Shown piece by piece: positions 20,186 through 59,787 of a stretch of DNA of 64,000 nt. This DNA is from Blepharisma stoltei ATCC 30299 (lineage: Eukaryota > Protista > Ciliophora): positions 496,001 through 560,000 of the forward strand of contig CBFDEM010000010.1 in assembly GCA_965603825.1 (NCBI GenBank), given 5' to 3'. Positions within the stretch are counted from its first letter, which is position 1; every line of letters begins with the position of its first letter. The notes under the pieces are model-generated. The model made no database searches. It was not told the origin of the DNA and worked only from the letters and a program-made list of their open reading frames with translations. The position numbers and the translations under genes were made by a program.

Positions 20186-21457
20186 TTATGAATAAGCAAG
20201 GACTTTCGAAACGATTTTTCTTGTAAAATCAAATGAATAAATTCCATCATTATTTACAAAATAACTCTTTTCTTCATAATTAATCGTATAACTTGTCATA
20301 ATTTCACTTAAAATAGAATATCTACCAACATTATTTCATGTAATTAAATTATCATTGCTTTCAAATATATAAGTTGGTAATTGAAAGAAAAAAACAGTCT
20401 CATTTTTCACTAAAAATAATTTAGGTGATGGATAAACATATAGTGACAAAATTTCTGAGTACGAATCTAAAATTGTATCATAATAAAAAAAATTTCCTGA
20501 ATTAGAAGCGGCTAGTAAGATATATTGTTTAAATAATGCACAAATAGCATAATTTGCATCAGAAAATTGTGCAGGTTTAAATGATACTCATCTGCTGTCA
20601 TTAATGTTGTATTTTTCTGAATTATTATGAACTCCACCAAATAAATAAATCCATCCATCTGTATAAACTGAGCATGCATTTAAGCTAGGTTTATATTGAG
20701 ATATATAATGAGACCCACCAATTTGGTCAATGACAATAGAAATATCACCGTTATAATAAAATAAACTCCCATTAGGAAGAATACATTTTGCTCCGTACTG
20801 GTCAAGTTTATGATTATTTTTCGTTATAATGTTTATTTTAGAAACTTTGCCATTTTCTGGATTAAAAACTCCTAAAGTATTGGCAGAGCTACAAAGTATA
20901 AATTTCATGCAGTTTGAATTTACCTTAAGGTATTCATAATAGTCAATATTTTGATCTGGTAAAACGAATTCATACATTTGACAAAGGTTATCTGTTTTGA
21001 GCCTATTTATATACAGCTTTGGTGATTGAATTTTTTTTATTTTTGAAATATTGATAAAAGGCAAATTTAGCAAATGCTCAACAAAAGTTAAAGGCTTTGA
21101 GTTATCAATTTCTTTTAAACAAGATATTTGCAATAGTGCTTGGTTTAATTTTTTATCATAATTTTTTAAATCTAATAAAGCTTTTTGAGCAGTTTTATTA
21201 AGTTGTTTGATTAGAAAGAGATCTTCACAGATAATTTTTGCTTGAATTGATTTTATTTCTGATTTTATAGAAGAAAATAATTGGAAAACTTTTTTTCTTG
21301 TATTTTCTTCAATTTTTGAAAACATTTTCGAATGTTTGCTGTCTATTTCAAGTTTATTGGGGCATTCTATATTGTCTTTGCAAGTTAACTCTGGATTTTT
21401 TTCAAAATAGCAAGCACTGTCTGAGCTTGAAGAGCATCCTCTCATATAATTTTCCAT
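20186..21457 (-). CDS. Coiled-coil plus Kelch-like beta-propeller protein with degenerate N-terminal Cys motif (~423 aa, intact)
   Basis: Open frame with TGA=W; CILPNGSLFYY, SVYTDGWIYLFGG, EKYNINDSRW. Confidence 0.82.
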
Positions 21458-21663
21458 AGTTTATTATTACTTATTGCTAATTTTCTTCCTAGGCAGTACT
21501 TCAGAATCAATATGCCAAAATAATTTTAATATAAAATTACTAAGATTTATTAGTTAATAATCCCTAGCTATATATAAAATTAATTTTAATAGTGCACTGT
21601 CGCCTACTGCAATATTGCATTCTAAAAAACTTTCCATAATCTATTTATTAAATAAATTTCACA

Positions 21664-22212
21664 ATGGGTGCTAAAATTTCAAGTCTTTTTAGCAGATTTT
21701 CTAAACGTAAAAATCTACGTATACTAATGATAGGACTTGAGGGTGCAGGAAAAACAACTATTCTTTATCAAATGAAACTTCATGAGCATATGGAATCAAT
21801 TCCTACAATTGGCTTTAATGTAGAAACATTTTATTATAAAAACATAGCAATTACATGCTGAGATATTTCTGGAGGAGAAAGAATAAGACCTCTATGACAT
21901 CATTATTTTGAAAATACTGATGGTGTAATTTTTGTTGTGGATTCTAATGATAGGCAGAGAATTGAAGAGGCTAAAGAAGAGCTCCATAGAGCATCGAATG
22001 ATACTAATCTTGAAAATGTTTCATTTCTTATACTTAGCAATAAAAATGATTTACCAAATGCGATGAGCAATTCTGAATTAATTGATAAGCTAGACCTTTA
22101 TATGATTCGAGGGAAAAATTGATACATTCAAAATTCATGTGCCTTAACTGGAGAAGGGCTTTGTGAGGGATTTAATTGGCTTTCAGATGAAATTTTGAGC
22201 CAAATTTATTAA
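21664..22212 (+). CDS. ARF: Divergent ARF GTPase (182 aa)
   Basis: MG N-terminus, [18 protein letters not shown](TGA)DISGGE, IRPLW(TGA), NKND, SCA. Confidence 0.92.
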
Positions 22213-22517: not shown

Positions 22518-24277
22518 TTAATCCAGCTTGAGTTAATATTTTTGCCTCTAAATTAAACTTGAAGTAACGAGTAATATCTGTATCAAAGATGTGCAATGTT
22601 TATTCCTCCTTTATTATATGACAAATAAACTTGATCAAAATCATTTATTATTGAGTCTCCAATTCGTCTCCAGGCAGTGTCATTTGACAATTCGCTTTCA
22701 TAGATTGATCCATTTTACATTCAATTAAATACAGTCTCTCTGCACTTATAAGAATCTTGCTGTTATCAGCTTGAAAATCATAAGGAATTGTTGCGAAAGT
22801 GTTGCTACCAATTGAATACCTCAAAAGATTTTTATTTTACATCCAGAAATCACAATATTCCCGTTAAATATTACACTAGTGCAACGCTAATCAGCTTGTG
22901 GCAGTGGCTTCTAATTTAATTCATCGGTTTTCATTTAAATCAAATCTCTCTGATAGAGTTAAAGTCTCATTCTATCTCTTCCTCCAAAGCAATAAACACT
23001 ATTATTGAAATAGATAGCTGATGAACTATAGCAAGGAGTTCCAGATGGCAGCTCCCGAACTCTATAATTCTCATCAATTATCAATGAAATCCAGAAACTG
23101 GGTTTCTATTACCAAAGCAAAATAAATTACCATTAGGAAGCTGAGCAATGCAAGTGCCGCAATCCAGTGGTAGAGGAGTCTCTACTATCCTGACTTCTTT
23201 ACTATCATTTTCTGTATCATAAATAATCAAATTAGTTCTGTTGTTATCTCTTATAATTGTATAAAGAGATGCTTTTTGGCGATAAGCATTAGTATAATCT
23301 TGATAAGCTTGCTGGAGAGTTGGATCATCAAGATAGATATCTCTTCTGTGACTTGAGCAGGTTCTCCTAAAGTCTTGCTCTAATTCTGGGTCATTTGGTC
23401 TATTTAAAATTTCAGATCTCTTCTCTCTTAGCTCTCTTGAGACTTTTGGGCTTTTTCTGATTTCATTGATTTTGCTGAGATCTTGATTTATGTTAATTAT
23501 TTGAGAATTAAGCAGATCTATTTCGTTTTTTGATTTAAGCATTATTTCTTCTTTCCAGTCTTTGAGGTCTCTCTCGCTTTTTTTATTCTCATTTATCAGC
23601 TTGGAAATAGAGTCATTGATGTTTGCTAGCTGATCATCCGTTGAATCAATGATATTTTTATGCTCTTCATTGGCTGATTTAATGTGCTCTTGAAGACTGT
23701 TTTCTATATTAGACAGTCTTTTATCTAAATAAGCTTCAAATTTATCCCCAATAAAACACTCAATCATTTTTTCAATTTTTTCACTGAGCACACAAAATAA
23801 TTTTGCACTTTTGGACGATTCTTGATTGGCTGGAATAATCCGCTTTAGTTTATCAATAGCTTCATCAGGCTGTAAAGTCAATAGTCCTAAAATCGGGTCT
23901 TGCTCTGATTTTGATAATTTTTGAGCTTGAGAAATTTTTGTAAAATAATTGCTTATTTCAACTGAGCTTGAATCCAGATTTTTTAAGAGTTCCATCATGT
24001 CACTTTCTGATTCAAGTAAGCGCTTGCTAAAGGATGCTAAGATCTTTCCTCTTAGCTTACTATTTTTTGAGTTTTCACTTGTAAGAAACTTAAGAATTTC
24101 TTCTTTTGTCTCTTTACATGACTCTACAAAAATGGAGTTGCGATTATGAGCTCTATTAGGGATTTTCATATGCTTACCAACATGCACTTCACAAGATAGA
24201 CTTTCAGGAGAGGTGCATGGGCATGAGTATTCAACCTCATTCTTGCACCCTGGCTCGAAACAATGCATAAGCTCCAT
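22518..24277 (-). pseudogene. MELMH-family Zn(B-box-like)-coiled-coil-Kelch-like propeller gene, copy 1; frameshifted in the propeller
   Basis: C-x4-C-x7-C-x-C-x7-C-x2-H-x3-H-x7-H; coiled coil; CIAQLPNGNLFCFG, YFNNSVYCFGG, SERFDLNENRW. Confidence 0.8.
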
Positions 24278-24484
24278 TAATTATTATAATGCAAGCTAAA
24301 TTTTATAAATATCTGCTATATAGTTAATAACACAAGAGCATTAGATGAGTTTTTTGAGCCTCTTAATAAGGCAGTGAAGATATTGATTTTTCTTTCAAGT
24401 TAAACTGACAGCGTCTAATGTGACTACCATTATAAAGGGCTGCAATATTCTCTTCTTTTTCTTATAACAGAGCTTAAAGTTTTA

Positions 24485-24677
24485 ATACATTCAAAATGCA
24501 TGTGCCTTAACTGGAGAAGGGCTTTGTAAAGGATTTAATTGACTTTCAGATGAAATTTTGAGCCAAATTTATTAATTTAGGAATTAATTAAAATCTGATA
24601 ATCTAGTTCTTAGTATAGATTCGATAAAACTTAATGAATTGGAAATTTGGGTAACCATTGAGTCATTTTTGTCTAAG
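24485..24677 (+). repeat. ~195 bp direct repeat, copy 2
   Basis: Near-identical to 22122-22316, including a TGG/TGA interchange at the ARF Trp codon. Confidence 0.9.
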
Positions 24678-24921
24678 ATTTTAGCATTATAGTCTATTCT
24701 GTGTAAGTCTTATATATGCTGAATTAGGATGAAATCTTCATTGATAATGCGCAATGTATTGGAGATAAAATAGCTGGAAAGCAAGCTCTCTAGAATTTTT
24801 GAAGGAAATTTCAAAAACAGTTATCCTATTTTTAAGGAAGAGAAAAATCAGGCCACTATGAAGGATTATAACAGTAATATGACATATAATAGAAAATTAT
24901 CTTAAAGGTATAATATTCATT

Positions 24922-25470
24922 ATGGGAACTTCAGCGTCCTGTCTTTGGAGCAGAAACACTGGGCATAAAGAAACATGTATAATTATGATTGGGCTTGATG
25001 GCGCAGGGAAAACAACGATTCTTTATCAAATCAAGCTTGGAGAAACTTCAACATATATCCCAACAATTGGATTCAATGTTGAAAGTATCAACTATAAAAA
25101 TATACAATTTTTAGTGTGAGATATTGGAGGACAAGAGAGAATCAGAGTTTTTTGGCCTAATTATTATGAAACCACTGATGCTGTCATTTTTGTTGTAGAT
25201 TCGAGTGACATAGAAAGAATTGAAGAAGCTAAATACGAACTCCACAAAGCAGCGAATAATAGTATCCTTAGAAATGCAGCATTCCTCATTCTTAGCAACA
25301 AAAATGATTTGCCCGGGGCATTAGGAGTCTCAGAGTTAATTGATAAGTTAGATCTATATCTGATTAGAGGCAGAAATTGGTATATTCAAAGTACTTGTGC
25401 AACGACTGGAGATGGGCTTTATGAAGGGTTAGAATGGCTTTGAAATGCAGTTCTTAGTAGAAGGGCATAA
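24922..25470 (+). CDS. ARF: ARF GTPase (182 aa)
   Basis: [18 protein letters not shown](TGA)[29 protein letters not shown]. Confidence 0.93.
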
Positions 25471-25834
25471 GAATAAAATTGTATCTCTGTGAAAATACCT
25501 TAATTTTCTAATATGCAATGCTTAAAGCAGATTTTTAAATAAAATTTTTAACCTATTAAATAATACTTAAATATGCCTGATAATATATTTTATTTCTTTC
25601 TAATTAAATATTCACAGATAGCAGCAAAAATAATAATTAGTTAGAAAATTTGCCAAATTATAAAAATTAAAAGTATTAAACTGAACTATACAAGTTTTAT
25701 AAACCCATTGGCAAATAATTTTAGAATTATTAATTATCTTCTATAAAATTATTAATTATATCAAATTTATATGTTAAATTTTTTTTTGTACTTAATTTTC
25801 CTAAAGGTAGCATCATTATAATGGTTTTGACGAC

Positions 25835-28263
25835 TCTTAAAGCGGGGAGTTTTAATTTCTAATAAAACGCAAATCAATAGTTATTTTTATTACTGCTTAT
25901 TAGGATAAGTACTTAAATGTCTAAGATCTCAGTATTATTTATTCTATGCTTACTATTGCACACGAATGTAGGAGGATCTTTACATGCATTTATAAAATAA
26001 TTTTTGCTAGCCTTTGCTCTCAAATATTATTATAAAGCTGGCTATTAATTCATTTAATGATATGTTCAAAAATTATGAGATGAGTCTAAAAAGTAAGTTA
26101 ACCTTCTTTGCATACCCAATAAAATATTTTATATTTAAATAATAAAATTTAAGTCAAGAAAACTAGGCTTAGTATTTTAAAATAATTAATTTAGCCATTA
26201 TATCAAAATGAATGGTGGTCCATTAGTGATTTTTCAAAGATTTTTGCCTCTTTCAGCTTCTTTTCTCTTAAATTAAATGAATAAGCACATTGATAAGTTG
26301 CAATATAAATTGTTTCTTTATAGCAAATGGGGTATCCACAAACGGCTGCACAATCACTAATTAATGAGCATTCTCCAATATTATTTCAAGTCATTAAATC
26401 ATCGTCACTCTCATATATAAATTTCGAAAATTCAAATAAAAATACCTTTTCGCCTATAGCAAAAAATTGTTTATGAACTTTAGGTGCTAACTTTATTGTT
26501 AAAATTTCTGAATAAGAGTCTGTAATAGTATCATAAAAGATAGGATTCTCGCTATCAGATGCTATTAAAATTTTGGTTTTGAATAATGTGCACAAGGCTC
26601 GATTTTCAATAGGAAAAGTATATTTACTAAGTGAAAACCATCTATTTTTATCCATGTCGAATTTTACTGCAACTTCATGAGATCCGCCAAAAATATAGAT
26701 TCTTCCATCAACATAAATTGCTCCTGCATAGTAGCATATACAATAAGGTGCAATATTTCTTGAATTTCCCAATGGGTCAATAATTATTCAAGTATCATTT
26801 CAAGCATAAAACAAGCTACCATGTGGAATTAAGCATCCAAATCCATCACAGTTAAGCTCTTTATTGTAATTATAACTAAATTTTTTTATCTTTAAGTTTT
26901 CCGCATCAAAAATTGCGAATTTGTTTGGAAATCCTCTACATACAAATTTAATTACTCGAGTAATAGGAGAATAGCGCTCACGGTAATCGAAACTGTTTTC
27001 CGATCGCTCTAATTTAAATAATTCAGCTATTTTATGTTCCCCGATACTTTTTATCTCAAGTTTTGGAGACCTGATTTTTTCAGTCACAAGTTTGCAGCCA
27101 GACAGTAATGTTTCGAGAAAAGAGAGTGGCTTTGAATTATCAATTTCTCTTAAAGTGCAAATTTCTGAAATAATTTCGTTTATTTTTTGATCATAAATTT
27201 TAAGCTTTTCTAAAGTATTTTCAGATGCTTTATGGATTTGCTGAACAAGAGAGCGTTCTTCATTGATTATTCTTATTTTGTCAGCTTTTATATCTGATTT
27301 TATTTTAGAATATAGCTGAATAGCAGATAAAACTGTTTCTTGCTTGATGTCTGACGAATTATTTTGAGCTTTTGGCAGTTGAGAATAATCAGATTTATGT
27401 TTCCTAAATAAAAGAATAGGTTTTGCTTCAGACATGCCAAAAAAGATTAAATATTAGTATGTCTTTGATTAAGCTTAAATTAAAATGCAGATAACTAGAA
27501 GTGATAAAGTTTTATTCTTGGATCTAAATAAAAATAAAATTCTTTCCTTATGGATAAGTTTACTTGAAAAAAAAATTTTCGCTTAAATCTAGCATAAATG
27601 CAAAAACACTTCTTTCAGAATTAGCACACTATATTGCTTTCTCCTTCTACATAAAAAATTATTGAAACTTATATTTCGAAAATAGAAGAGAAAATCTGTT
27701 ACACAAATAATGAACAGGCAATTTTAATGATTTTAAAATATAAACATTATTCTTTAAATGGCATAGGCTAAGAATTAAATTAAGCAAGACTTATGTTAAT
27801 TAGATTTTAATTATGTTGCTTTACTATAAAATTAAGACTAAAATAATAATTTTAGTGCCAAAATTAAAATTCTTTAGGGAATTTTAAAGGTTTTTAATTT
27901 GTCTACTGTATTTTCTTTTAAGTTAAATGAATAAGCAAAATGTGAAGTTTCGATATAAATTGATTCTTGATAAAGCACAGGGTAACCAAGTACAGTCTCA
28001 TTATTTGATATTATTCAGCAGTGTCCAATATTATTTCACGTTATTAAGCTATCTTCACTTTCATATATAAATTGCGAAAATTCTATTAAGAATAGTTTTT
28101 CGCTTTTAGAGCAAAACAATTCAGATGTGCCAGAACATAGCTGTATAGATAAAATTTTTGAGTAAAAGTCTGCAATTGTATCATAATAAATAGGAGTAGC
28201 ACTTAAGGACGCTATTAAAATTTTGCCCTTAAATAGACAGCATATAATGCGATTCCCAATAGA
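25835..28263 (+). repeat. Segmental duplication block A
   Basis: Direct, high-identity match to 38627-41001. Confidence 0.88.
26191..27435 (-). CDS. MSEAK-type coiled-coil plus Kelch-like propeller protein (~414 aa, intact)
   Basis: Open with TGA=W; CLIPHGSLFY, AIYVDGRIYIFGG, KFDMDKNRW. Confidence 0.83.
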
Positions 28264-28270
28264 AATTGAG
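27905..28270 (-). pseudogene. 3' fragment of a Kelch-like propeller paralogue (duplicated at ~40700-41000)
   Basis: Reverse strand gives FKGKILIAS, IEFSQFIYESED, FAYSFNLKE. Confidence 0.6.
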
Positions 28271-28804
28271 CATTTACTAACTACGCCTGTCTGCTTATAA
28301 AAAGGTTTATTTTATAGGTTTATAAGGGTTTAGCTGAATTTACCCTTGAAATTCAACAAGAGTTTAAAATAAACAAATTGAATTAGTGGAACTTTTGCTC
28401 CTCCAAAATTAAATTTAGTCTTTGTTGAAATTTTGAGAAGGCTCCCGGCTTTGAGATTAATGTCTCAAGGTAAATACAAATTATCACTATGTCTTAGAAG
28501 TATCAAGTCTATAAATTTTTCGAAGTCTCGATTGTAATTTTCTTTAATGGTGATGTCTGGAATAAAAGAGGTTGGATTAAAAGACTTCAATGAAGCTGCC
28601 ATTCAACTTATTTTCCCCAATTGCAGGGTCATCTTCAAAATTTTCAATGCTTGAGCCTACTCAATCATTTTTCTCAAATTCCAGTAATTTGTTTGTGCTG
28701 CTATATATTCAAAAATGCTTTGCTTTCAATTTTTCACACCTCATTAAAGCTAAGCTCTGCTAAGAAAGAGAAGAGAATATTGCAGCCCTTTATGATGTTA
28801 GTCA

Positions 28805-28944
28805 TATTAGACGCTGCCAGCTTAACTTGAAAGAAAAATCATTATCTTTACTGCCTTATTAAGAGGCTTAAAAAACTTATTTAATGCTCTTGTGCTAGCT
28901 ATATAGCAGATATTTATAAAATTTAGCTTGCATTATAATAATTA
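28805..28944 (+). promoter_or_regulatory. Conserved upstream region of MELMH-family genes
   Basis: The ttagacgctgccag...cactgccttattaagaggc...tatagcagatatttataaaatttagc block precedes the ATG in four copies (24277-, 28945+, 37124+, 59788+); promoter role is inferred. Confidence 0.55.
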
Positions 28945-30687
28945 ATGGAGCTTATGCATTGTTTCGAGCCAGGGTGCAAGAATGAGGTTGAATACTCATG
29001 CCCATGCACCTCTCCTGAAAGTCTATCTTGTGAAGTGCATGTTGGTAAGCATATGAAGATCCCTAACAGAGCTCATGCTTGCAACTCCATTATTGTAGAG
29101 CCATGTCAAGAGACAAAAGAAGAAATTCTTAAGTTTCTTACAAGAGAAAACTCAAAAAATAGCAAGCTAATGGGAAAGATCTTAGCATCCTTTAGCCAGC
29201 GTTTACTTGAATCAGAAAGTGATATTAGAGAACTCTTAAAAAATTTGGATTCAAGCTCAGCTGAAATAAGCAATTATTTTACAAAAATTTCTCAAGCTCA
29301 AAAATTATCAAAATCAGAGCAAGACCCGATTTTAGGACTATTGACTTTACAGCCTGATGAAGCTATTGAGAAATTAAAAAAGATTATTCCAGCCAATCAA
29401 GAATCGTCCAAAAGTGCAAAACTATTTTGTGTGCTCAGTGAAAAAATTGAAAAAATGATTGAGTGTTTTATTGGGGATAAATTTGAAGCTTATTTAGATA
29501 AAAGACTGTCTAATATAGAAAACAGTCTTCAAGAGCACATTAAATCAGCCAATGAAGAGCATAAAAAGATCATTGATTCAACGGATGATCAGCTAGCAAA
29601 CATCAAAGACTCTATTTCTAAGCTGATAAATGAGAATAAAAAAAGCGAGAGAGACCTCAAAGACTGGAAAGAAGAATTAATGCTTAAAACAAAAAACGAA
29701 ATAGATCTGCTTAATTCTCAAATAATTACAATAAATCAAGATCTCAGCAAAATTAATTAAGAATGCTCAAATGCCTCAAGAGCTAAGAGAGAAGAGATCT
29801 GACATTTTAAACAGACCAAATGACCCAGAATTAGAGCAAGACTTTAGGAGAACCTGCTCAAGTCAGTAGCGATCTCTATCTTGATGATCCAACTCTTCAG
29901 CAAGCTTATCAAGATTATACTAATGCTTATCGCCAAAAAACATCTCTTTATACAATTGATAGAGTATAACAACAGAACTAATTTGATTATTTATGATACA
30001 GAAAATGATAGTAAAGAAGTCAGGATAGTAGAGACTCCTGAACCACTGATTATTTCACTTGCATTGCTCAGCTTCCTAATGGTAATTTATTTTGCTTTGG
30101 TAATTGCCCAGATTCTGGGATTTCATTGATAATTGATGAGAATTATAGAGTTCGGGAGCTGCCATCTGGAATTCCTTGCTATGTCATCAGCTATCTATTT
30201 CAATAATAGTGTTTATTGCTTTGGAGGACAAAATAAAATTAGATCCTTTAACTCTATCAGAGAGATTTGATTTAAATGAAAACCGATGAATTAAATTAAA
30301 GCCACTGCCACAAGCTGATTACTGTTGCACTAGTGTAATATTTAACGGGAATATTGTGATTTCTGGTAAAGATAAATAAAAATCTTTTGAGGTATTCAAT
30401 TGGTAGCAACACTTTCGCAACAATTCCTTATGATTTTCAAGCTGAAAAATACAAGATTCTTATAAGTGCAGAGAGACTGTATTTAATTGAATGTCGTTGG
30501 ATCAATCTATGAAAGCGAATTGTCAAATGACACTGCCTGGAGACGAATTGGAGACTCAATAATAAATATCTTTTCTCAAGTTTATTTGTCATATAATAAA
30601 GGAGGAATAAACATTGCACATCTTAATGATACTATTAGTTACTTCAAGTTTAATTTAGAGGCAAAAATATTAATCAAGCTGGATTAA
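28945..30687 (+). pseudogene. MELMH-family Zn-CC-propeller gene, copy 2; TAA at 29758 and frameshifts in the propeller
   Basis: Near-identical to copy 1 outside short patches. Confidence 0.8.
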
Positions 30688-30829
30688 AATAATTTCCTAA
30701 TAAATAGGTCTCATTTAATAATCTTTTGCTATTAACTCTTAAAATTTTTTATTGTTTAATCTAGTATTTAAAGTACTTTTAAATCTAAAGTTTGTGAAAA
30801 ATATCTCGAAAAACTGTTAAAAAGAGAAA

Positions 30830-31740
30830 AAGGGCTGAATTTATAGCTCCTCAATGGTTTTTCTTCAATGGAAAAACTGATGATTTGTCTTTGCTAAGGC
30901 TTCTTGATGAAAACAAAGAAAATTTATCCCCAGAAGATTTTATCTTTCAGAAACTTCTCAATGAAAATGTCTTAATAGAAGCTGAAGAAAGTTTCAAAAC
31001 AATGAAAAAATCTACAAGCCCACAATATCAGACTTCACGGATGAGATCCTCAACACAGTGAGAGTTCCTCTTACCCCGCTTCTTCCAAAAAGCTTAAAGC
31101 AGTTACACCCCCCAAAAGAAATTTCAATAAGAAGTCCCAAAAGCTTCTGTGCTCAGACTCATCTTTTTCAATAAAAAATCTCAAATTTTCAGCAATCATC
31201 TCACAAGAGAAAGTCCATACTCTGCCTTCTTTACATAAACTCAGCACAAATAATAGTAGCACTTGACCGGCATGCATCTCATGAGCGTATAAAATTAGAA
31301 GAAATCGAGAGAAAGCTGCCTCAACATTTAGAATCTGAAGAATGGATCAAGTTTCAAACTATGAGAAGTCAGCTTTGATTCAGCAAAGCAAAAGACTGTA
31401 AAAATGAAAATTCAAAATAACGGCAATTGGGGATGCTCAAGCTTTAACACAGGTCCCAAAGCTTTTTGGAAAGGTTTTATGACAGCCAGAGCTGCTGTAA
31501 GTGTTCATACCCAATCGTTAATCCCTAATTCAATTTTGACTATCATGAAATCTAAAGCATGCAGAAGCTCAATAAATTTCGGAAACGAAATGACAGTAGA
31601 AGAATGCGAAAAAATCTGCAAAGACTTAGAGAACTGAGTTTTTTCTACACATTGCGCACACGGCAGGCCTACAGTTTACCCTTTAATGAAGCTTCCTCCT
31701 TATATCTCTGAGCTCCCATCTATAAACTTTAGTTTGTAAT
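30830..31740 (+). pseudogene. MLH3: MutL-family (MLH3-like) C-terminal fragment, frameshifted
   Basis: LDRHASHERIKLE (degenerate DQHAx2Ex4E), SKACRSSINFG, HCAHGRPT. Confidence 0.8.
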
Positions 31741-31825
31741 AATAACGCATACTTTTAAAAATGCATTCTCATCAGAAAAAAGCACTTCTCAGCTGCTCTG
31801 GGAATAATGCAGCTGCTTTGGATTT

Positions 31826-32323
31826 ATGGGCACCTTTACATATGAGGCAAAAGCACAACTAGTGTCGAAGAAGCCCCTCTATCCCTTACATGTGAATCTG
31901 CAGCATCAGCCAAGGTTAGAACGTTTTACCTCCCAGCTCGGTTTCAGTGACCGTGAAATGACCTACATAGAATTACCTATCCCGCTTAAGCTAAAACACT
32001 ACGTTTACCACATTCTTGCTGATCAAGTCGCCTGTGGGCTCAATTTTACTTGCATTATTGGAAATGAAAAAGTGACTTTTGGCATTTTCAAGACTGATGA
32101 GGAGGAAGAAGAAGGAAAAGAAGAAGCCCAAGAGGAAGCTAAAGACAAAGTAGAAGACCCTTTTGACTATGAAATAGCAGATGATGACTGCAAGCCTACA
32201 AAGGCAGCTCTTGATAATTTGAGATCTCCTAAAACAAGCGTATCTTTAGAAGAAATCATAATTGTTGGAAAGCATCTGAAGTGTGAAATAGCCGGGCATT
32301 TGAGTGAACACAAACATATGTGA
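31826..32323 (+). pseudogene. RCC1-repeat-like fragment
   Basis: QLGF...P...DQVACGLNFTCII followed by an acidic tract; no complete gene evident. Confidence 0.45.
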
Positions 32324-33106
32324 ATGAAAATGATGTGGATATCGGCCCAATCTTTGAGCTTTAGTAGCCGGCGCCTTATTTGGCAGAGGACATTGACAAA
32401 AAATCATGGACCCGGATCGAGGTTTTACTGACGCAGGTTGAGTTGCGATGCTTATCTGATCAGCCAAAGTCTAATCCTGAGGTAAGTTTTTCCTCATGGG
32501 CAAATGGGAAATGAAGTTGGAAGGAGCTATTGCAAAGGTCCTGAGGAGGTTCTTTGGCCAACTGGCCACAGAACAATGCATGGCAACATCTTGTGTTTAA
32601 CTTTTTTATTTTGTAAATAGCTGACAAGAAATGTAACCTTTTGAATTTTCTGTTGAGGCTGCTATGCTGACTCTCTGCAGTAACGCAAACTTTTCTACTT
32701 TTACTTTCATATGCAGGCCCTAATCGGAAGGAGCAACACTGCGCAAAACTGTTTGCAGATGGTGAGCAAAAGGTGGAGCGGTATGAAGTTTCATGCTACA
32801 GTGGGCTACTCTATAATCTTGCGTAATGATCACTGGGTATAATAGTGAATACAAACTTGAAATAATGACGCCTTTTAAGTCGAGCAGGCTAAAAGAAGCA
32901 AGCTTTATTAATATCTTGAAAAATCAGATCAAGACTGTGATTCATAAACCTCTATTGGCATTTTTACTTTGCTCAATTGAATGAAAACTTTCTAAAAAGA
33001 CATAAATTTTATTAACGACGTATTAGGCCGAGACCGTAATGAACTACTCCAAAAAATGCAGATTTTCATAAAATTTGGTAATAATAAGTAGTCATTATAA
33101 TAATTA

Positions 33107-33387
33107 TATATGCATACCCGTGTGCTTCTCCTTTAACTTTATGCTGTGAACTGTACTTCGGGAAGCATTTAAAGCTTCATGATTGGCTCATGCCATTGAA
33201 AGAATTTATTTAGAGCCGGTTAAAGGGACAAAAAAGCAATTCTTAGATGTTTTACAAAAGAGTAGTCAAAACATAGCAAAAGTCCTAGCATCCTTTTGCT
33301 AACGTTTAGTTGAATCAAGAAATGGCTCTGAAGAGCTTTTGGAATCAGTTTCAGATGAGCTAAGCAATTGTTTGACAAAAATTCTCA
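33107..33387 (+). pseudogene. Decayed 5' fragment of an MELMH-family gene
   Basis: YAYPCASPLTLCCELYFGKHLK...EPVKGTK...LASF...LVES. Confidence 0.65.
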
Positions 33388-34776
33388 TACGCCTCCTTTA
33401 AGAGATTGATTTTTTTTCATGGATTTTGTTTATTTCTTGGATATTAACTAAGCCTTCTTGCGTTGCAGAAAAGTTAATTCAGCTTTAGCTTTGAATTTTC
33501 TTAATTTTTCAATATATTCTTAATAATTTATTTCTTTTTCAGTAAATCTTTTCTCTTTCCAATAAATCTTGAGCAAGTCTGGGCGGATCTCGATTCATTA
33601 ATCTCATAAGTGTGAGTTGGGAGTACCTACTATTTAAATGCACTTCTACAAGTATTATCAAGTACTCCAGATTTTGACCAAAAATTACCTTCAAATTTTA
33701 AAAATATTTGCTTCAATGTCAAGAGCTATATCATGAGTCTAACAGAAAGGCAGACTTTCAATTTTTCGCTGAAATAAAAAGCTTCAGCTCTGCTTATTTC
33801 ATGAATTCTGCATGGTAATAAATACATAGTTTAATGATTACTCAGAAAATGACCCAAAAGAGCTTTATTTATCATTAATAAACCTTTTGTCAGATTACAA
33901 GAAAATTATATGCAAACTATGTCACGGTTTTTCGAATCTAGAAGGGCCATCTCTCTTTTGTATTTTGAATAATCTGTTAAAACAAGAAATTGACGAAAAT
34001 TAAAAGCCATGAAGAAGAAAAAGAGTATAAAGGGGGAATTTTGTTGCATTGTGAAACTTTTGGGATAAATATATCAAACATTTTTGTATTTTATATTTGC
34101 GAATATGCTCGGCAAAAAAGCTCAAGAAACTTATAATTTCTTTTATTGTAGTGATAAATTTGAGCTGTATGTAGTAATAAGCTATTATAGTAGTTGGTGT
34201 AAGCATTATTTACATATAGTTATATAATGCAAAGCGAATAAAATATTGACCATATTAGCTGCTCATCACCTGATTTCGAGCATGCCTATATCTTGTTTTA
34301 AAAAATGCTTTTTATGAAGCAATTTTTATCTTTTTAAAAATTTGATGCTTTACCAAGACCCATAAATCATATTTGCATTAACATCGCTGACAAAGAAGAC
34401 AATTGGGGTACCATGGCGCCCAAAAGTCAATTTATTTGCCTCATCAAAGTTTTTTTTAAAGGCATAAAGGTTTCTGAATAAATAATTTTGGGAAGTCTAT
34501 TGCATTTTGTTGCAATTTTTCACTTCATTTTCTCTCTTAATGGAAATAGAGCTATAAAACTCATCAAGTAAGCTTGCACGGATTTCATTAAGGATGCATA
34601 AATTTTATTAAAAATGAGAAGCAACGCAGTCTCTATGCTTACTCTTCAAACTTAAGCTGAGGGCGTTTCGTTTTGGGTAGTGTAAATGCTCTCTGTCAAG
34701 TCTCTGTGAGCATAGACATGTGAATATTTATATCGTATTTTGCTATAAAAAAGTTATCATCTCTACATATAATAAA

Positions 34777-34813
34777 TGCCCGATGATGGCACTCAATGTG
34801 CCATCATCGGGCA
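34777..34813. repeat. Perfect 16-bp GC-rich inverted repeat with 5-nt loop
   Basis: TGCCCGATGATGGCAC-tcaat-GTGCCATCATCGGGCA. Confidence 0.95.
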
Positions 34814-35992
34814 ACCTGTATATGCTCTGGAGTGCTTAGCTGTAAGCTGAGTAAATGCATTTTATGAATTTTCTTATTTTGCCTCGTTCCCCAAACATTA
34901 AAACTTTTTTAGTCGAAACAGAATTTGCTAAAATAATGATTTTCTTTCTAGCTACAACCGCAAGGATAGAGTTGTTTGACAAAGAAACTACAGAGCTGCA
35001 TTTTCATCAAATTCAAGCTTAAACAAAGAGAAAAATCTGATATTGAGACTTTCCCATCAATTATCAAACTTGCAACTCTTTCTTGATGGTAAGAAATTTG
35101 TTTAATTTTGCAAGGCTAAGCTCTTTACAGTCATCTGAGCAAGAAATAAGCAAAGAGCAGTCCTCGGTGACCTTCAAGTCATTTATATATTTAGAATGAT
35201 ATTTCGCATATCAGTTTCGTCTATTCTGTGCCCTATCATAGTGCACTTCCCACCCGAAAATAAAATTTTAGCATGTCTAGGCTTGACTTCTAAGGAGGAT
35301 TTCTCCACAAGCCAGTGCAATACATCTCACACGAGAAGTATGAACTTTAGTCTTTGCAATCGGAGTCTTTAAATAATTTATTTTCCATTGCCGAATCCAA
35401 TGCCCTTTATGCTGTGTGATTCATAATATTCTCCATTATCTTCATAAGAATCATTGAGATCACTGCGTCTTCAATTTGAGTTTCTTCAACCACTCTACTA
35501 GAAGGCAAATCTGCTTTTATTAGCTTCCCACTTCTTATAGCAATTGCAATTTCAGGATTGATGCCATTAGAAAAAGAAATTTATTGACTTGAAGTGTTTT
35601 TATTCCCCTTTCGAGAAGAATTGTGGAGATATGTCTCTTTCATGCAGTCTTTATGGATTTTTTAAAGCTTAATTGTTGCATCTCTGCTTGCAGTAAAAAT
35701 GTAGTTACTGAAAGGGTTTGGAATGATAAACCTCAGACATTGTCATGCACCTTAAATAATGGCTTTATTATTTCAGCTTCGGTTTAGTCATCTATACTGA
35801 CTCATTCATTGTCGTCGCCAGCTATTATATACAAGTTCTTGGTATTTGTATAGGCTAATTTTTTGACTTTATCATGATTGTTATGAAAAATTGCTATATC
35901 CTTTGTGATTTCTAAAGCTGGCGAGCCGACTACAACCCTATCCTCCTTTATTTTGGTTAAGCTGCCTTCTGAGTTCAAATATAGTTATGGCA

Positions 35993-36380
35993 TTAATTCC
36001 AGAAAAAGCAAATTATATAAACATTGGTCTTTGGATCTTGCCTTATCTTCATGAAATCTAATCTCCTGTCAAGCGAGCAAGGCGTTATTTGCTGACTTTG
36101 AATGATAGATGGACTTATAATGCTTGCATTTCTGCCTATTTCTTTGCTTCTTGCAATCTCAGCTGTCCAAAATTGTTCTTCGACAATTGCTATCACATAT
36201 AAAAAATTCTTATCAGTTGTAAAACCCAGATATTTTCCATCTGGGCTGAAAGCACTAGAATTCAAGAGCTCACCTATAATGAATTTTAAGTCCAGATGCT
36301 TTAGATGTCATTTGACACGTCTTTCTTCTCTAGGTTCTCTTGCTATCCTGCATGATCTACATCATCATAAAAACTTGTAG
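35993..36380 (-). pseudogene. WD40-like fragment
   Basis: SSAFSPDGKYLGFTTDKNFLYV. Confidence 0.4.
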
Positions 36381-36560
36381 CGAGTAGTGGAGCTGTTAGA
36401 GATATTTTATTATGAAATTGTATAAATCCATAACTTCTACCTATAATAATTATTATCTAATTATTGGCTATTTCTATGATTGCTTATTATATAAAGTTCA
36501 ACAGGAATTTAAAATAAACAAATTGAATTAGTGGAACTTGTGCTACATCAAAAATTAAAT

Positions 36561-36923
36561 TTAACCTTTGTAGCTAATATAGAAGGTAGCTTTCTGGAGT
36601 CGAAATTTTGAGAAGGTTTCGGCTTTGAGATAAATGTCTCTCATATAAGGCCAAAAAAAATTATCACTAATTCTTAGAAGCTTCAAGTCTATAAATTTTT
36701 GGAAGTCTCGACTGTAATTTTCTTTAATGGTGATGTCTGGAATAAAAGAGGTTGGATTAAAAGACTTCAATGAAGCTGCCATTCAAATTGTTTTCACAAT
36801 GACAGGGTCATCTTCAAAATTTTCAATGCTTGAGCCTAGACAGTCATTTTTCTCAAACTCCAGTAATTTGTTTGTGCAGCTATTTATCCAAAAATGCTTT
36901 GCTTTCAATTTTTCACATGTCAT
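36561..36923 (-). CDS. Short hypothetical ORF divergent from the MELMH gene (degenerate copy at ~28400-28745)
   Basis: ATG at 36923, open for 120 codons with TGA=W; no recognisable motif. Confidence 0.3.
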
Positions 36924-37123
36924 TAAAGCTAAGCTCTGTTAAGAAAGAGAAGAGAATATTGCATCCCTTTATGATGGTAGTCACATTAGACGCTGCCAGT
37001 TTAACTTGAAAGAAAAATCATTATCTTCACTGCCTTATTAAGAGGCTTAAAAAACTTATTTAATGCTCTTGTGTTAACTATATAGCAGATATTTATAAAA
37101 TTTAGCTTTCATTATAATAATTA

Positions 37124-38526
37124 ATGGAGCTTATGCATTGCTTCGAGCCAGGGTGCAAGAATGAGGCTGAATACTCGTGCCCATGCACCTCTCCTGAAAC
37201 TCTATTCTGTGAACTGCATCGGTTAAAGCATATGAAAATCCCTAACAGAGCTCATGCTTGCAACTCGATTTTTGTAGAGCCATGCCAAGGGACAAAAGAA
37301 GAAATTCTTAAGTTTCTTACAAGAGAAAACTCAAAAAATAGCAAGCTAAGGGGAAAGATCCTAGCATCCTTTAGCAAGCGCTTACTTGAATCAGAAAATG
37401 ATATTGAAGAACTCTTAAAAAATCTTGGATTCAGGCTCAGCTGAAATAAGCAATTATTTTACAAAAATTTCTCAAGCTCAAAAATTATTAAAATCAGAGC
37501 AAGACCCGATTTTAGGACTATTGAGTTTACAACCTGATGAAGCTATTGAGAAACTAAAAAAGATTATTCCAGCCAATCAAGAATGGTCCAAAAGTGCAAA
37601 GCTATTTTGTGTGCTCAGTGAAAAAATTGAAAAAATGATTGAGTGTTTTATTGGGGATAAATTTGAAGCTTATTTAGATAAAAGACTGTCTAATATAGAA
37701 AACAGTCTTCAAGAGCACATTAAATCAGCCAATGAAGAGCATAAAAATATCATTGATTCAACGAATGATCAGCTAGCAAACATCAAAGACTCTATTTCTA
37801 AGCTGATAAATGAGAATAAAAAAACGAGAGAGACCTCAAAGACTGGAAAGAAGAAATAATGCTATAAAACAAAAAACGAAATAGACCTGCTAGATTCTCA
37901 AATCAATTACACTAAATCAAGATCTCTATCAAAAATTAATTGAAGTTTCAGATAAAACCTCAAATGCTTCAAGAGCTAAGAGAGAAGAGATCTGAAATTT
38001 TAAATAGACCAAATGACCCAGAATTAGAGCAAGACTTTAGGAGAACCTGCTCAAGCTACAGTAGCAGATGTCTGTGCTTGATGATCCAACTCTTCAGCAA
38101 GCTTATCAAGATTATACTAATGCTTATCGCCAAAAAACATCTCTTTATACAATTATAAAGGATTAATGACAGAACTAATTTGATTATTTACGATACAGAA
38201 AATGATAGTAAAGAAGTCAGGATAGTAGAGACTCCTAAAGCACTAAATTCTAGCACTTGTATTGCTCAGCTTCCTAATGGTAATTTATTTTGCTTTGGTA
38301 ATAGACCCATTTCTGGGATTTCATTGTAATTGAATGTGAAAATGGATCAATCTATGAAAGCGAATTGTCAAATGACACTGCCTGGAGATGAATTGGAGAC
38401 TCAATAATAAATGATGATTTTGCTCAAGTTTATTTGTCATATAATAAAGGATGAATAAACATTGCACTTGATGCTAGTTACTTCAAGTTTAATTTAGAGG
38501 CAAAAATATTAATCGAGCTGAATTAA
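37124..38526 (+). pseudogene. MELMH-family gene, copy 3; frameshifts and ~355 bp internal deletion
   Basis: Alignment to copy 2; deletion junction at TAATTGA 38327-38333. Confidence 0.82.
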
Positions 38527-38626: not shown

Positions 38627-41001
38627 TCTTAAAGGGGGAGAGTTTTAATTCTAATAAACGAAATCAACAGTTATTTTTATTACTGCTTATTAGGATAAGT
38701 ACTTAAATTTCTAAGATCTCAGCATTATTTATTTTATGCTCACAATTGTACACAAATGTAGGAGGATCTTACATGTATTTATTAATTAATTTTGCTAGCC
38801 ATTACTCTCAAATATTATTATAAACTCGCTATAATTCATTAATGATATATTCAAAAATTATGAGGTGTGTCTAAAAAGTAATATATTAAACGTCTTTGCA
38901 TGCCCAATAAAATATTTTATATTTAAATAATAAAATTTAAGTCAAGAAAACTAGGCTTAGTATTTTAAAATAATTAATTTAGCCATTATATCAAAATGAA
39001 TGGTGGTCCATTAGTGATTTTTCAAAGATTTTTGCCTCTTTCAGCTTCTTTTCTTTTAAATCAAATGAATAAGCACATTGATAAGTTGCAATGTAAATTA
39101 TTTCTTTATAGCAAATGGGGTATCCACAAACAACTGCATAATCTTTAATTAATGAGCATTCTCCAATATTATTTCAAGTCATTAAATCATCGTCACTCTC
39201 ATATATAAATTTGGAAAATTCAAATAAAAATACCTTTTCACCTACAGCAAAAAATTGTTTATGAACTTTAGGTGATAACTTTATTGGTAAAATTTCTGAA
39301 TAAGAGTCTGTAATAGTATCATAAAAGATAGGATTCTCACTAGAAGATGCTATTAAAATTTTGGTTTTGAATAAAGTGCAAAAGGCTCGATTCTCAATAG
39401 AAAAAGAATATTTGCTAAGTGAAAACCATCTATTTTTATCCATGTCGAATTTTACTGCAACTTCATGAGATCCTCCAAAAATATATATTTTTCCATCAAA
39501 ATAAATTGCTCCTGCATGGTAGCATATAGCATAAGGTGTAATATTTCTTGAATTTCCCAATGGGTCAATAATTATTCAAGTATCATTTCAAGCATAAAAC
39601 AAGCTACCATGTGGAATTAAGCATCCAAATCCATCACAGTTAAGCTCTTTATTGTAATTATAACTAAATTTCTTTATATTTAAGGTTTCCGCATCAAAAA
39701 TAGCGAATTTGTTTGGAAATCCTCTACATACAAATTTAATTACTCGAGTAATGGGAGAATAGCGCTCACAGTAATCGAAACTGTTTTCCAATGGTTCTAA
39801 TTTAAATAATTCAGCTATTTTATGTTCCTTAATACTGTTTATCTCAAATTTTGGAGACCTGATTTTTTCAGTCACCATTTTGCAGCCAGACAGCACTGTT
39901 TCGAGAAAAGAGAGTGGCTTTGAATTATCAATTTCTCTTAAAGTGCAAATTTCTGAAATAATTTCGTTGATTTTTTGTTCATAAATTTTGAGCTTTTCCA
40001 AAGTATTTTCAGATGCTTTATGGATTTGCTGGACAAGAGAGCGTTCTTCATTGATTATTCTTATTTTGTCAGCTTTTATATCTGATTTTATTTTAGAATA
40101 TAGCTGAATAGCAGATAAATTGTTTCTTGCTTGATTTCTGAAGAATTATTTTGAGCTTTTGTCAGTTGAGAATAATCAGATATATGGTTCTTAAATAAAA
40201 GAATAGGATTTGCTTCAGACATGCCAAAAAAGATTAAATATTAACATGTCTTTGATTAAGCTTAGATGAAAATGCAGATTACTAGAAATAATAAAGTTTT
40301 ATTCTTACAATCCCCAAATGAAAACAAAATTCTTTCCTTATGAATAAATTTACTTGCAAAAGATATTTCGCTTAAATCTAGCAGAAAATTTAAAAACACT
40401 TCCTTTCAGAATTAGCACGCTATATTGCTTTCTCCTTCTGCATCACAAAAGTATTGAAACTTATATTTCGACAAAAATAGAAGAGAAAATATGTCTCACA
40501 AATAATGAACAGGCAATTTAATGATTTTAAATATAAACACTATTCTTTAAATGGCATAGGTTAGAAATTAAATTAAGCAAGAATGATGTCAATTAGTTAT
40601 TTCTAATAACTAAGATTTTAACTAAAATAATAATTTTAGTGCCAAAATTTGGTCTTCTAAAACTCGTTAGGAAATTTTTAAAGGTTTTTGATTTGTCTAC
40701 TTTATTTTCTTTTAAGTTAAATGAATAAGCAAAATGTGAAGTCTTGATAAAGCGCGGGATAGCCAAGCATAGTTTCATGATCTGATATTATTCTGCAGTG
40801 TCCAAATTTATTTCACGCTATTAAGCTATCATCACTTTTATATATAAATTGCGAAAATTCTATTAAAAATACTTTTTCGCTTTTAACGCAAAACAATTTA
40901 GATGTGTCAGAACATAGCTGTATTGATAAAGGAGTAGCACTTAAGGACGCTATTAAAATTTTGCTCTTAAATAGACAACATATGTGCGATTCCCAATAGA
41001 A
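38627..41001 (+). repeat. Block A' (copy of 25835-28263)
   Basis: Direct sequence match. Confidence 0.88.
38979..40222 (-). CDS. MSEAK-type CC-Kelch-like gene, copy 2; single 1-nt deletion near 40120 (error or pseudogene)
   Basis: 1244 nt versus 1245 nt for the intact paralogue. Confidence 0.7.
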
Positions 41002-41083: not shown

Positions 41084-41759
41084 TTATGTGCTTCTACTAA
41101 TAATTGCATTTGAAAGTCATTCTAACCCTTCATTAAGCCCATCTCCAGTAATTGCACAAGTACTTTGAATATACCAATTTTTGCCTCTAATCGGATATAG
41201 ATCTAACTTATCAATTAACTCTGAGACTCCTAACGCCCCGGGCAAATCATTTTTGTTGCTGACTCTTCACTCTTTTCTTATTGGGATTTGCAATTTATAC
41301 ATCTCCAATTTTTATGAGTTTTTCTTATAAAATTTATAGTTTTTAATAATTTTTTATTTACATTGCAATCTGGGAGGATAAGAATAAGGATGTTGAGTTT
41401 CTAAGGCTACTATTATTCGCTGCTTTATGTAGTTCGTCTTTAGCTTCTTCGATTCTTTCCATGTCACTCGAATTTAAAACAAAAATAATAGCATCGGTGT
41501 CGTCATAATAATAATAATAATGATACCACAGAACTCTGCTTTTCTCTTCTCCTCCTATATCTCACACTAAAAATTGTATATTTTTATATCTAAGATTTTC
41601 CTCATTGGGCCCATTTGTTGAGACTAATACTAAAGTTTCTCCAATCTTTAATTTATAAAAAATCGTTGTTTTCCCTGCGCCATCAAGCCCAATCATAACT
41701 ATACGTAAATCTTCGTGCCTGGTAAATCTACTCCAAAGATGCGATACTGAAGTTTCCAT
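41084..41759 (-). pseudogene. ARF: ARF paralogue (inverted copy of the 24922 gene) with a 119-bp insertion, a frameshift and loss of Gly2
   Basis: [21 protein letters not shown]-repeat expansion (HYYYYY), insertion 41261-41379 just before SNKND. Confidence 0.85.
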
Positions 41760-42159
41760 AATGAATATTATACCTTGTAAGATAATTTTCTAAAAACGCA
41801 TCATATTATAATTATCATCCTTCATATTGGGTCAATTTTTCCATTCCTTAGCATCATTAGATAATTCTTTTTCTAAAATTTTTAATAAATTCAGTAATTT
41901 TCATGCACTTTTTGCATTTAAGTATCTCATTGTTTTGACAGATATGAATTATTCCTTTTAGTTCAAGCATCAAAGTCATGCAGCCTATTGAGTTTTCACT
42001 ATTAAAATTCAATTTATTTTATTTAAAACAAATTATAACTTATATAATTTCACACAATCGCAAATATTTATTGGGCTATTTTATTAAGCAATACTTCTCA
42101 GACATTTCGCTTTAGTGTTCTCATAAAATTAAATGATCTTCATTATTTTTAATTTTTAA

Positions 42160-44247: not shown

Positions 44248-44835
44248 TTTATCATTATTATAAAAACTAATATAAAATTGTGTTAAATTTATAATTTTAG
44301 AGACAAATTAAGCAGAGTTAGGAATGATTATTGATTATTTGCATATTTTTATATATAGCTTTAATACTAAATCTTTATATTATTAATAAAATTATATTTG
44401 TCCATCAACATAAACTCTTCCTCTCCTAAACTTATCTATATAATGAGAATCTCACCATTCTAGTATATTTAAAATTATTTTTATCAAATTAATGAAGCAT
44501 AAATTTTTGAACACAAAAATTCACTTCCTCTTCGTAAAATTTGTAAAATCCCATACATGTTTAACAAAAAGCATGATTATAAAGAAAAATTTCTATTAAT
44601 CTAATTCTTCTCTCACAATTGTTACAAATATGCCATATTTCATGATGAAAATCTTTAAAATATATAACGTTAGGGATTTTGGTAATAGATAATGATCTAT
44701 TCTGAGCCATAAAAGTCCTAAAGTTTGGATCCAGCTTATGATAGCTTAAGTTTAGATATAATTATCAAATCATTAATAGTAAAATAATACTCTAAGTGAA
44801 AAATATAATGAAAAATCGAATTTTTTATATTAATT

Positions 44836-46128: not shown

Positions 46129-46239
46129 TTCTACTATCTTTAATTTATAAAATTATTTAATCAGCACGATAATATGATTTTTAGCTTACACTCTGCAAAT
46201 ATAATGAATGAGCCTATATTTTATTGAAATATATAGCAT

Positions 46240-46722
46240 TTTTCAGCTTCTTTTTCTTTAAATTAAATATAAAATGCCTGATAAGTTTGTATAATAAACT
46301 TTTTCTTCATATAATTCTTTGCCATTTTTGTTCTACTTCAATTAAGGAAAGATTATTTTTATTAAAGAGTCTTTAGCTTTCATATGCTATATCGAATTAT
46401 CCTTTTGGAATGCAGGAATTAAAATGACAGCGCATAATAATAAATTCGTAAACTCTTCATCTCAAAACTGAATCTCTAACATATAATTGCTCAAGGATTT
46501 TTGAGTCACCTAAATCTCCATTATTTTCATATAGATATTCTTCATTGCCAATTGCATAATGATTTTCCCTACCAATAATAAATATAATTTATATTGCGCT
46601 TCTGATGGAATTGATAAATTTGAAAAAGAGTCTATATCAATATCATAGATATACACTTTATTTGTGACAAGGCTCCATAAAAATGCGTAATTCTTAAATA
46701 AAGGGCAGACCTGTGAAGACAC
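46240..46722 (-). pseudogene. Decayed propeller fragment related to 52919-53626, with an ~125 bp insertion
   Basis: QVCPLFKNYAFLWSLVTNKVYIYDIDIDSFSN shared. Confidence 0.7.
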
Positions 46723-46836
46723 GAGTTCTAAGATATTCTGCTATAAGCTTAATTTTATGGATAATTATCAAATCATTAATAGTAAATCATCTCTAAGTGA
46801 AAAATATAATGAAAAATCGAATTTTTTATATTAATT

Positions 46837-49740: not shown

Positions 49741-49774
49741 TTCTATAATGAAACATCGAATTTTTATATTAATT

Positions 49775-59634: not shown

Positions 59635-59787
59635 ATGGTAGTAATATTAGACGCTGCCAGTTTAACTTGAAAGAAAAATCATTTTCTTCACTGCCTTATT
59701 AAGAGGCTTAAAAAACTTATTTAATGCTCTTGTGTTATCAACTATATAGCAGATATTTATAAAATTTAGCTTGCATTATAGTAATTA

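Follow-up and report, generated by a model that had tools for sequence, protein, structure and literature searches.

Loop-hypervariable Kelch propeller genes of Blepharisma stoltei and three frame-broken copies in a 64-kb window

Three closely related gene copies in the macronuclear genome of the ciliate Blepharisma stoltei raise the question of how a coding framework can stay nearly unchanged while a dozen short patches within it differ from copy to copy. The copies, here called c1 (22518-24277, - strand), c2 (28945-30687, + strand) and c3 (37124-38526, + strand), lie in a 64,000-nt stretch (contig 10, positions 496001-560000), hereafter the window, of a 41.46-Mb genome in 64 contigs with a G+C content of ~30%. 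A sequence-only reading of the window had placed the copies at these coordinates, correctly, and had proposed a family of diversifying Kelch receptors. The account favoured here is that the family is an inherited hypervariable recognition repertoire on a Kelch propeller, and that the three window genes are its dead members. TGA was found at conserved Trp positions inside otherwise open frames of this genome, and translations were therefore made with TGA as Trp. A full-text search of the literature returned no description of the propeller family, and the genome paper does not mention Kelch (PMC9942806).

Scrambled patches and broken frames in c1, c2 and c3

When the DNA of the copies was aligned, long identical blocks were separated by short scrambled patches. 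In the c1/c2 propeller (window 29960-30690), 63 differing columns of 743 grouped into 14 clusters. Random placement of 63 columns gave a mean of 31.4 clusters and a minimum of 20 (5000 trials), so the patch clustering is not due to chance. Between patches, the propeller frameworks of c1 and c2 had 0-2 differences in ~560 nt, in line with the near-invariant scaffold that the sequence-only reading had described. Eleven of the 12 patch coordinates given in that reading (29958, 30040, 30105, 30171, 30229, 30320, 30367, 30444, 30494, 30568 and 30622) lay within 3 nt of a c1/c2 cluster, and its spacing of two patches per blade, a blade being ~135 nt long, was recovered as well. The twelfth, 29864, falls in a variable linker upstream of the stretch tested for clustering.

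Length changes in the patches of c1-c3 were often not multiples of 3, and the propeller reading frames of all three copies are therefore broken. In c1, a single 398-amino acid (aa) open reading frame (ORF; 23081-24277) still covers the Cys/His zinc module, the coiled coil and the first blade, with the N-terminal Cys/His module at 24143-24277 (- strand) followed by a long helix that starts the coiled coil; beyond the first blade, 7 net frameshifts were counted relative to the nearest intact paralogue (locus L003). The N-terminal ORF of c2 (271 aa) stops at a TAA in the variable linker, and its propeller has 6 net frameshifts relative to the same paralogue, each within a loop patch. The most decayed copy is c3, in which frameshifts are present already in the N-terminal/coiled-coil part and an internal deletion of ~358 nt has removed blades 2-5. 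Public annotation lists truncated products only, 399 aa at c1 and 271 aa at c2. The three copies are pseudogenes, at least for the propeller, which is no longer encoded; the earlier treatment of them as working receptors did not hold.

Two further causes of the breaks were considered and rejected. Introns of 15-16 nt are described in B. stoltei (PMC9942806); no GT...AG borders were seen at the few breaks checked by eye, and removal of the sole 15-nt intron candidate in c1 left the frame broken. Ribosomal frameshifting was considered by eye for one c1 break, where a shift that restored the frame would do so at the expense of conserved strand residues.

Position of the variable sites on the predicted propeller

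Intact relatives of the copies matched Pfam Kelch_6 above its cutoff of 25.3 bits (27.4 and 29.3 bits in P0014 and P0005); Kelch_1 was borderline, and one repeat per protein scored. No Pfam Kelch match was obtained for the window copies because their propellers are broken. In the AlphaFold2 (AF2) model of P0014:401-670 (predicted local distance difference test score, pLDDT, 91; predicted template modelling score, pTM, 0.87), 23 strands follow each other in blade order, and a closed, six-bladed Kelch propeller is predicted with confidence. The top Foldseek matches were the Kelch domains of KLHL20, KLHL3, Keap1 and PfK13 (E ~1e-11, template modelling (TM) score 0.73-0.77), with the peptide complexes 5wfv and 4ch9 among the matches. 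Four residues were invariant in a 15-sequence alignment: G115 and G116, the Gly-Gly doublet after strand B, together with W136 and W221, the Trp in strand D. The Kelch assignment made from the letters of the window was borne out by domain score, model and fold matches alike.

Per-site entropy, the check suggested by the sequence-only reading, was laid on the strand order of the model, for 9 close members and then for 85 intact members. In each blade, hypervariability was found at the residues that follow the GG doublet (B-C loop) and at the final 2-4 residues ahead of strand A (D-A loop). Among the 85 intact propellers, entropy exceeded 2.5 bits at 18 of the 35 B-C loop positions and 17 of the 48 D-A loop positions, compared with 0 of the 15 A-B turn positions and 3 of the 23 C-D turn positions. 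Variation was not even, being concentrated in the B-C and D-A loops, and in-frame insertions fell in these loops too. The topology of a four-stranded antiparallel blade brings the D-A and B-C loops to one face and puts the A-B and C-D turns on the other; Keap1 and KLHL3 bind peptides on the D-A/B-C face. From this blade topology, rather than from distances in the model, the variable loops are predicted to share one face, and the conserved turns to lie on the other. The patches, which had been assigned to a single face before any model was available, coincide exactly with the D-A and B-C loops on the same topological basis.

The patches of c2 (all + strand) were assigned to loops from the model and entropy. 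The B-C loops of blades 1 and 2 correspond to 29958-29965 and 30105-30117, both clusters of c1/c2 differences, and that of blade 3 to 30229-30245, directly after the GG doublet, where c2 has 4 additional nt and a variant unique in the genome. The B-C loop of blade 4 (30367-30373) has gained 1 nt, that of blade 5 (30494-30497) has a 2-nt deletion, and that of blade 6 (30623-30637) is again a c1/c2 cluster. Among the D-A loops, the patch before blade 2 (30040-30055) has a 1-nt deletion relative to in-frame relatives and the patch before blade 3 (30172-30183) a 2-nt deletion; those before blades 4 (30298-30323), 5 (30446-30451) and 6 (30568-30575) are c1/c2 clusters.

The zinc module has the pattern C-x4-C-x7-C-x-C-x7-C-x2-H-x3-H-x7-H, with its eight Cys/His ligands conserved in the family alignment. 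No Pfam match was found for it even at E <= 10. The AF2 model of this region (pLDDT 85, helix 55-89) gave weak fold matches to the p62 ZZ domain and the PML B1-box (E 0.6-1.5, TM by target 0.48-0.68). RING was absent from the Pfam matches, and nothing precedes the single Cys/His module at the N-terminus of the protein. The coiled coil lies between this module and the propeller and is seen in the model as a long helix from residue 55 onward, within a repeat-rich helical region of ~200 residues that has no Pfam domain.

Family size, selection and rival explanations

At least 59 related places were found by a DNA search of the genome. A propeller profile (hidden Markov model, HMM) gave at least 147 matches at E <= 1e-10, a lower bound with 143 of 583 candidates scored; most have only TGA 'stops', and these copies are therefore taken as intact. 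The propeller is joined via a coiled coil to the eight-ligand Cys/His module or to a protein kinase N-terminus, and a C-terminal TPR array is added in some members. Thirty of the 147 matches begin within 20 kb of the start of a contig (count from the match table), where ~3% would be expected. The family is strongly enriched at chromosome ends, and the cluster in the window is an internal exception. Many more propeller matches were noted near far contig ends.

In protein searches, all named matches were from B. stoltei. An exhaustive profile search of proteins yielded 95 representatives at E <= 1e-30; the 20 sampled from them comprised 16 B. stoltei proteins, 1 MMETSP transcript fragment, 1 JGI/IMG protein and 2 long ENA proteins, the last two matching the propeller profile in 7-16 stretches each. 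Among named hits, the family appears only in Blepharisma. About 9 short representatives (~105-234 aa; P0068, P0075, P0077, P0083, P0088, P0099, P0104 and others) start at profile position 138-142, directly after the conserved TGA-encoded Trp, and the one that was looked up is an MMETSP transcript. They probably stem from transcripts of another Blepharisma read in the standard code, in which case the family is expressed.

Selection tests were run on the 85 intact paralogues. For the sister-pair test, loop classes were defined from the model only, and 28 phylogenetically independent pairs were used. The ratio of nonsynonymous to synonymous change (dN/dS) was 1.08 in B-C loops, 0.83 in D-A loops, 0.55 in A-B plus C-D turns and 0.37 in strands, while the proportion of synonymous differences (pS) was equal across classes (0.25-0.29). 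Hot columns were defined on 29 sequences outside the sister pairs and measured in 19 close pairs; dN/dS was 1.43 at these cross-validated sites (bootstrap 1.13-1.84) vs. 0.57 elsewhere. Tree-based counting gave a dS of 13-18 synonymous changes per site in every class and a dN 2-3 times higher in the B-C and D-A loops, with 12 of the 14 nominal replacement-excess sites in or adjoining those loops. At four-fold sites with unchanged positions 1-2, 6.4% differed in hot columns and 8.3% in the rest (p = 0.58). Hot sites were enriched in His, Trp, Arg, Asp and Tyr. The tendency of changes to hit codon positions 1-2 and spare position 3, pointed out earlier from the window copies, was only weakly present family-wide (differences of 0.35, 0.34 and 0.27 at positions 1, 2 and 3 of hot codons). 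Loop variants were essentially unique to each of the 85 genes, with no shuffled cassettes. With replacement change in excess in the loops and synonymous change not, targeted hypermutation is less well supported than diversifying selection acting on paralogues inherited through the germline. There was no support for a raised local mutation rate in working genes. The positive selection put forward in the sequence-only reading was thus upheld at the cross-validated hot sites and not for whole loops; the targeted diversification mechanism offered beside it left no sign in the intact genes, where synonymous change was uniform across loops and framework.

A different pattern was seen in the framework. 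In the subgroup that includes c1-c3, synonymous divergence of the framework was 2 to 8 times below that of the N-terminal halves of the same gene pairs. Synonymous differences per sites were 0/80 in the framework vs. 12/151 in the N-terminal half for c1-c2 (p = 0.009), 4/80 vs. 48/149 for c1-L003 (p = 8e-7), 7/80 vs. 36/150 for L003-L007 (p = 0.0045), and 12/79 vs. 45/151 for L003-L004, both of them intact (p = 0.023). The c1 and c2 N-terminal halves had a pS of 0.076 and a dN/dS of ~0.4, and the 210 nt upstream differed by 11%. Copy-to-copy divergence was mosaic, changing from framework block to framework block, and the propeller subgroup of c1-c3 was found attached to kinase N-termini on other contigs, with homology from ~position 680-840 of c2. 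Family-wide, strand dS was not depressed (tree-based counting), and the low framework divergence is therefore attributed to sequence exchange or recent module transfer and not to nucleotide-level constraint.

We consider it likely that c1-c3 are three decaying members of a very large Blepharisma family under loop-diversifying selection. Each member would be a six-bladed Kelch propeller joined by a coiled coil to a protein kinase or a putative two-zinc Cys/His module at the N-terminus, with a TPR array added at the C-terminus of some. The propeller would serve as the recognition part, its beta-strand framework and the turns of one face being held constant and the 11-12 loops of the opposite face (B-C after the GG doublet, end of D-A) differing in every paralogue. 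Diversity would then be inherited, with one specificity per gene, and would arise from gene duplication and loss, mostly near chromosome ends, plus diversifying selection on loop residues; exchange between paralogues, by gene conversion or module swapping, would keep the framework more alike than the rest of the genes. Ligand binding by the variable face and a part in an intracellular recognition repertoire would follow from this account, and it is in this sense that we infer a receptor role. Several results weigh against it. Whole-loop dN/dS is ~1, and the value above 1 comes from a subset of sites and from counting methods rather than maximum likelihood site models. By the Nei-Gojobori method (NG86), pS was 1.7 times higher in hot columns, an excess attributed to multi-hit codons because the strict four-fold test shows none. 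When framework sites were examined for recombination with the pairwise homoplasy index (PHI), the result was not significant (p = 0.30, with 38% of site pairs incompatible), and ongoing gene conversion in the framework is for this reason graded as likely and not as formally shown. Finally, 10 of the 13 net frameshifts of c1 and c2 fall in patches that make up 25% of codons (binomial ~1e-4), which selection cannot explain; the other 3 are found within or next to loops or in the C-terminal tail.

That last result is one ground for a programmed, loop-targeted process, in which local mutagenesis or junctional imprecision would rewrite the patches, in the germline or somatically in the polyploid macronucleus, so that functional copies would be the in-frame survivors and c1-c3 the raw output. 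The frameworks of c1 and c2 are identical in spite of these frameshifting length changes, and patch divergence (~30-50%) is far above the neutral 8-11% of N-terminal synonymous sites and upstream DNA. Homopolymer content and AT-richness do not account for the bias, the run densities of 2.7 and 2.2 per 100 nt being too close; framework frameshifts occur too in other pseudogenes of the family. Against such a process, the loops of the 85 intact genes show no excess of strictly synonymous change, and no template or donor was found: none of the c1/c2 patch variants is present in ~120 other family loci, and two variants searched with their flanks had no other match in the 41-Mb genome at <=3 mismatches except one ordinary paralogue. 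None of the 12 germline-limited inserts of the region lies in a propeller, and the strain is described as virtually homozygous, with an assembly from HiFi reads (PMC9942806). We hold programmed rewriting of the patches to be very improbable. The same low standing is given to a dedicated loop process of either kind, be it mutagenesis confined to loops or homology-guided exchange that restores the framework and stops at loops, in the germline or in the amitotic macronucleus; if true, a unicellular eukaryote would possess a programmed system of variable receptors, and c1-c3 would be its unselected output. For the frameshifts themselves, the favoured explanation is that conversion tracts confined to identical framework blocks erase framework mutations and stop at heterologous loops, with loop-directed mutagenesis the less favoured cause. 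Decayed copies with a pristine framework and broken loops may record framework-limited gene conversion or hint at loop-directed mutagenesis.

The loops could also be merely unconstrained, diverging by neutral drift on a constrained propeller with neither positive selection nor a recognition repertoire. Whole-loop dN/dS near 1 (1.08 and 0.83 in sister pairs, 1.16 and 0.88 in tree-based counting) and the frequent in-frame indels of the variable loops are what such drift would give. Only one face varies, however, and the equally exposed A-B and C-D turns are the most conserved (0.98 and 1.48 bits; dN/dS 0.40-0.67); the bootstrap interval at the cross-validated hot sites excludes 1, and the residues enriched there (His, Trp, Arg, Asp, Tyr) also speak against it. 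Neutral drift is regarded as unlikely, though less so than the remaining alternatives. One of these is that the frameshifts of c1-c3 are consensus errors at paralogue differences and that the genes are really intact. Every break does lie where paralogues differ, and Logan contigs of DNA runs lacked c2's own sequence at ~30321-30330 and 30444-30450; these contigs collapse paralogue bubbles, however, so that absent coverage there means little. The assembly was built by Flye from PacBio HiFi reads of up to ~12 kb (PMC9942806), long enough to span a copy plus its unique flanks, and more than 85 paralogues with the same 12 patches were assembled in frame. Several breaks are not homopolymer length changes, and c3 has its 358-nt deletion and coiled-coil breaks besides. 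Assembly error as the source of the broken frames is therefore thought quite improbable.

Known repertoires and the surroundings of the copies

The family was compared with known systems. Kelch adaptors (Keap1, KLHL2/3/12/20; BTB-Kelch) share the predicted six-bladed propeller, the GG doublet after strand B and the fold similarity (TM 0.73-0.77), and the D-A and B-C loops that contact bound peptide in Keap1 and KLHL3 are the ones that vary in Blepharisma. Unlike BTB-Kelch proteins, the Blepharisma family has no BTB/BACK, its partners being the Cys/His zinc module, kinase and TPR; sequence identity is ~12-15%, and >140 paralogues with hypervariable loops stand against a few dozen conserved ones. 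TRIM5alpha and the teleost finTRIM proteins (PMC2657112) resemble the family in a domain order that runs from a zinc module through a coiled coil to a recognition domain at the C-terminus, in a large lineage-specific expansion and in positive selection in recognition-domain loops. The Blepharisma proteins would not count as canonical TRIM proteins, since they have no RING, a Kelch propeller in place of B30.2/SPRY and a zinc module that is only a B-box candidate, and come from a ciliate and not a vertebrate. The expanded F-box families of nematodes and plants, in which Kelch is one of the substrate-binding domains in plants (PMC8120010, PMC3719486), are likewise large, with fast turnover and an adaptive substrate-binding domain; no F-box was detected in the Blepharisma members examined, where the outputs are kinase, zinc module and TPR.

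Germline immunoglobulin V segments and the LRR surfaces of plant NLR proteins are similar in that the repertoires of paralogues are inherited, the framework is conserved and the contact loops hypervariable, dN exceeds dS in contact residues, and paralogues exchange sequence; the fold differs, and the Blepharisma loops are without shown somatic recombination or hypermutation. Borrelia vlsE cassettes, chicken pseudo-V genes and diversity-generating retroelements likewise combine an invariant DNA framework with variable patches and frame-broken copies. In contrast to vlsE and the pseudo-V genes, Blepharisma has no expression site plus donor array, and patch variants are not common to copies. Cassette-type conversion (vls/VSG-like) was not indicated, as patch variants do not recur between copies among the 85 intact genes, c1 and c2. 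For a diversity-generating retroelement, no template repeat was found when two patch variants were searched in the genome and the c1/c2 variants in ~120 family loci; reverse transcriptase was not searched for. The closest functional analogues appear to be TRIM5alpha/finTRIM, expanded F-box adaptors, and germline V-segment or NLR repertoires.

A hallmark of immune-type recognition is the large inherited repertoire in which a fixed framework carries hypervariable contact loops, as in V segments, TRIM5/finTRIM, NLR and F-box proteins. To our knowledge, such repertoires are almost unknown in free-living protists. The Blepharisma family would be a strong candidate for one, wired to kinase, zinc/coiled-coil and TPR modules; possible roles would include recognition of pathogens, symbionts or prey, and self/non-self and mating recognition. 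As Blepharisma is culturable and developmental RNA sequencing data are published (PMC9942806), the family should be testable.

The public NCBI record CAJZBQ010000010.1 has the same sequence as the window plus 12 inserts of 62-2144 nt, identity elsewhere being by construction. The inserts, at window positions 21541, 22498, 23612, 25844, 27367, 28336, 29628, 32663, 33108, 34087, 35525 and 35829, are taken as probable germline-limited segments (internal eliminated sequences, IESs), and several are flanked by short direct repeats. Among inserts above the detection limit of that assembly, none of the 12 falls in a propeller and none at any patch, so that the germline-limited insertion at variable patches expected of IES- or V(D)J-like junctional diversity was not seen. 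A 924-nt insert lies directly past the c1 stop, exactly at the end of c1/c2 homology. Two inserts lie in coiled coils, 162 nt at 23612 (c1) and 110 nt at 29628 (c2), and consist of additional units of a 54-nt (18-aa) coding repeat, INENKKNERDLKDSISKL; they resemble differences in repeat number between germline-derived and macronuclear reads. Logan contigs show a 'go back' joint at the site of this repeat; the switch in homology between kinase-type and zinc-type genes falls at this place too.

Several other genes of the window are related to the copies. Further intact genes of related subfamilies with Cys/His module, coiled coil and propeller lie at 44809-46128, 47021-48133 and 49712-51067 (+ strand), at 26191-27453 and 38979-40145 (both - strand), at 20186-21460 (- strand) and at 42160-43845 (+ strand). 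Variation among the three tandem genes at 44809-51067 falls mainly in the propeller loops, unlike that of the 26191/38979 pair. In P0022, an intact gene of 380 aa (59785-60930, + strand), the promoter-proximal 230 nt and the zinc module, both of c1-c3 type, are fused directly to a protein kinase domain; the gene is a recent chimera. Direct repeats of ~1 kb with 97% identity (52614-53658 vs. 57937-58980) flank 54579-57899, and each holds a 241-aa propeller-like ORF. Genes for Arf-family small GTPases (Pfam Arf) at 21652-22212, 24769-25470 (+ strand) and 41358-41789 (- strand) are interleaved with the propeller genes, and repeat comparison showed that they were duplicated together with them.

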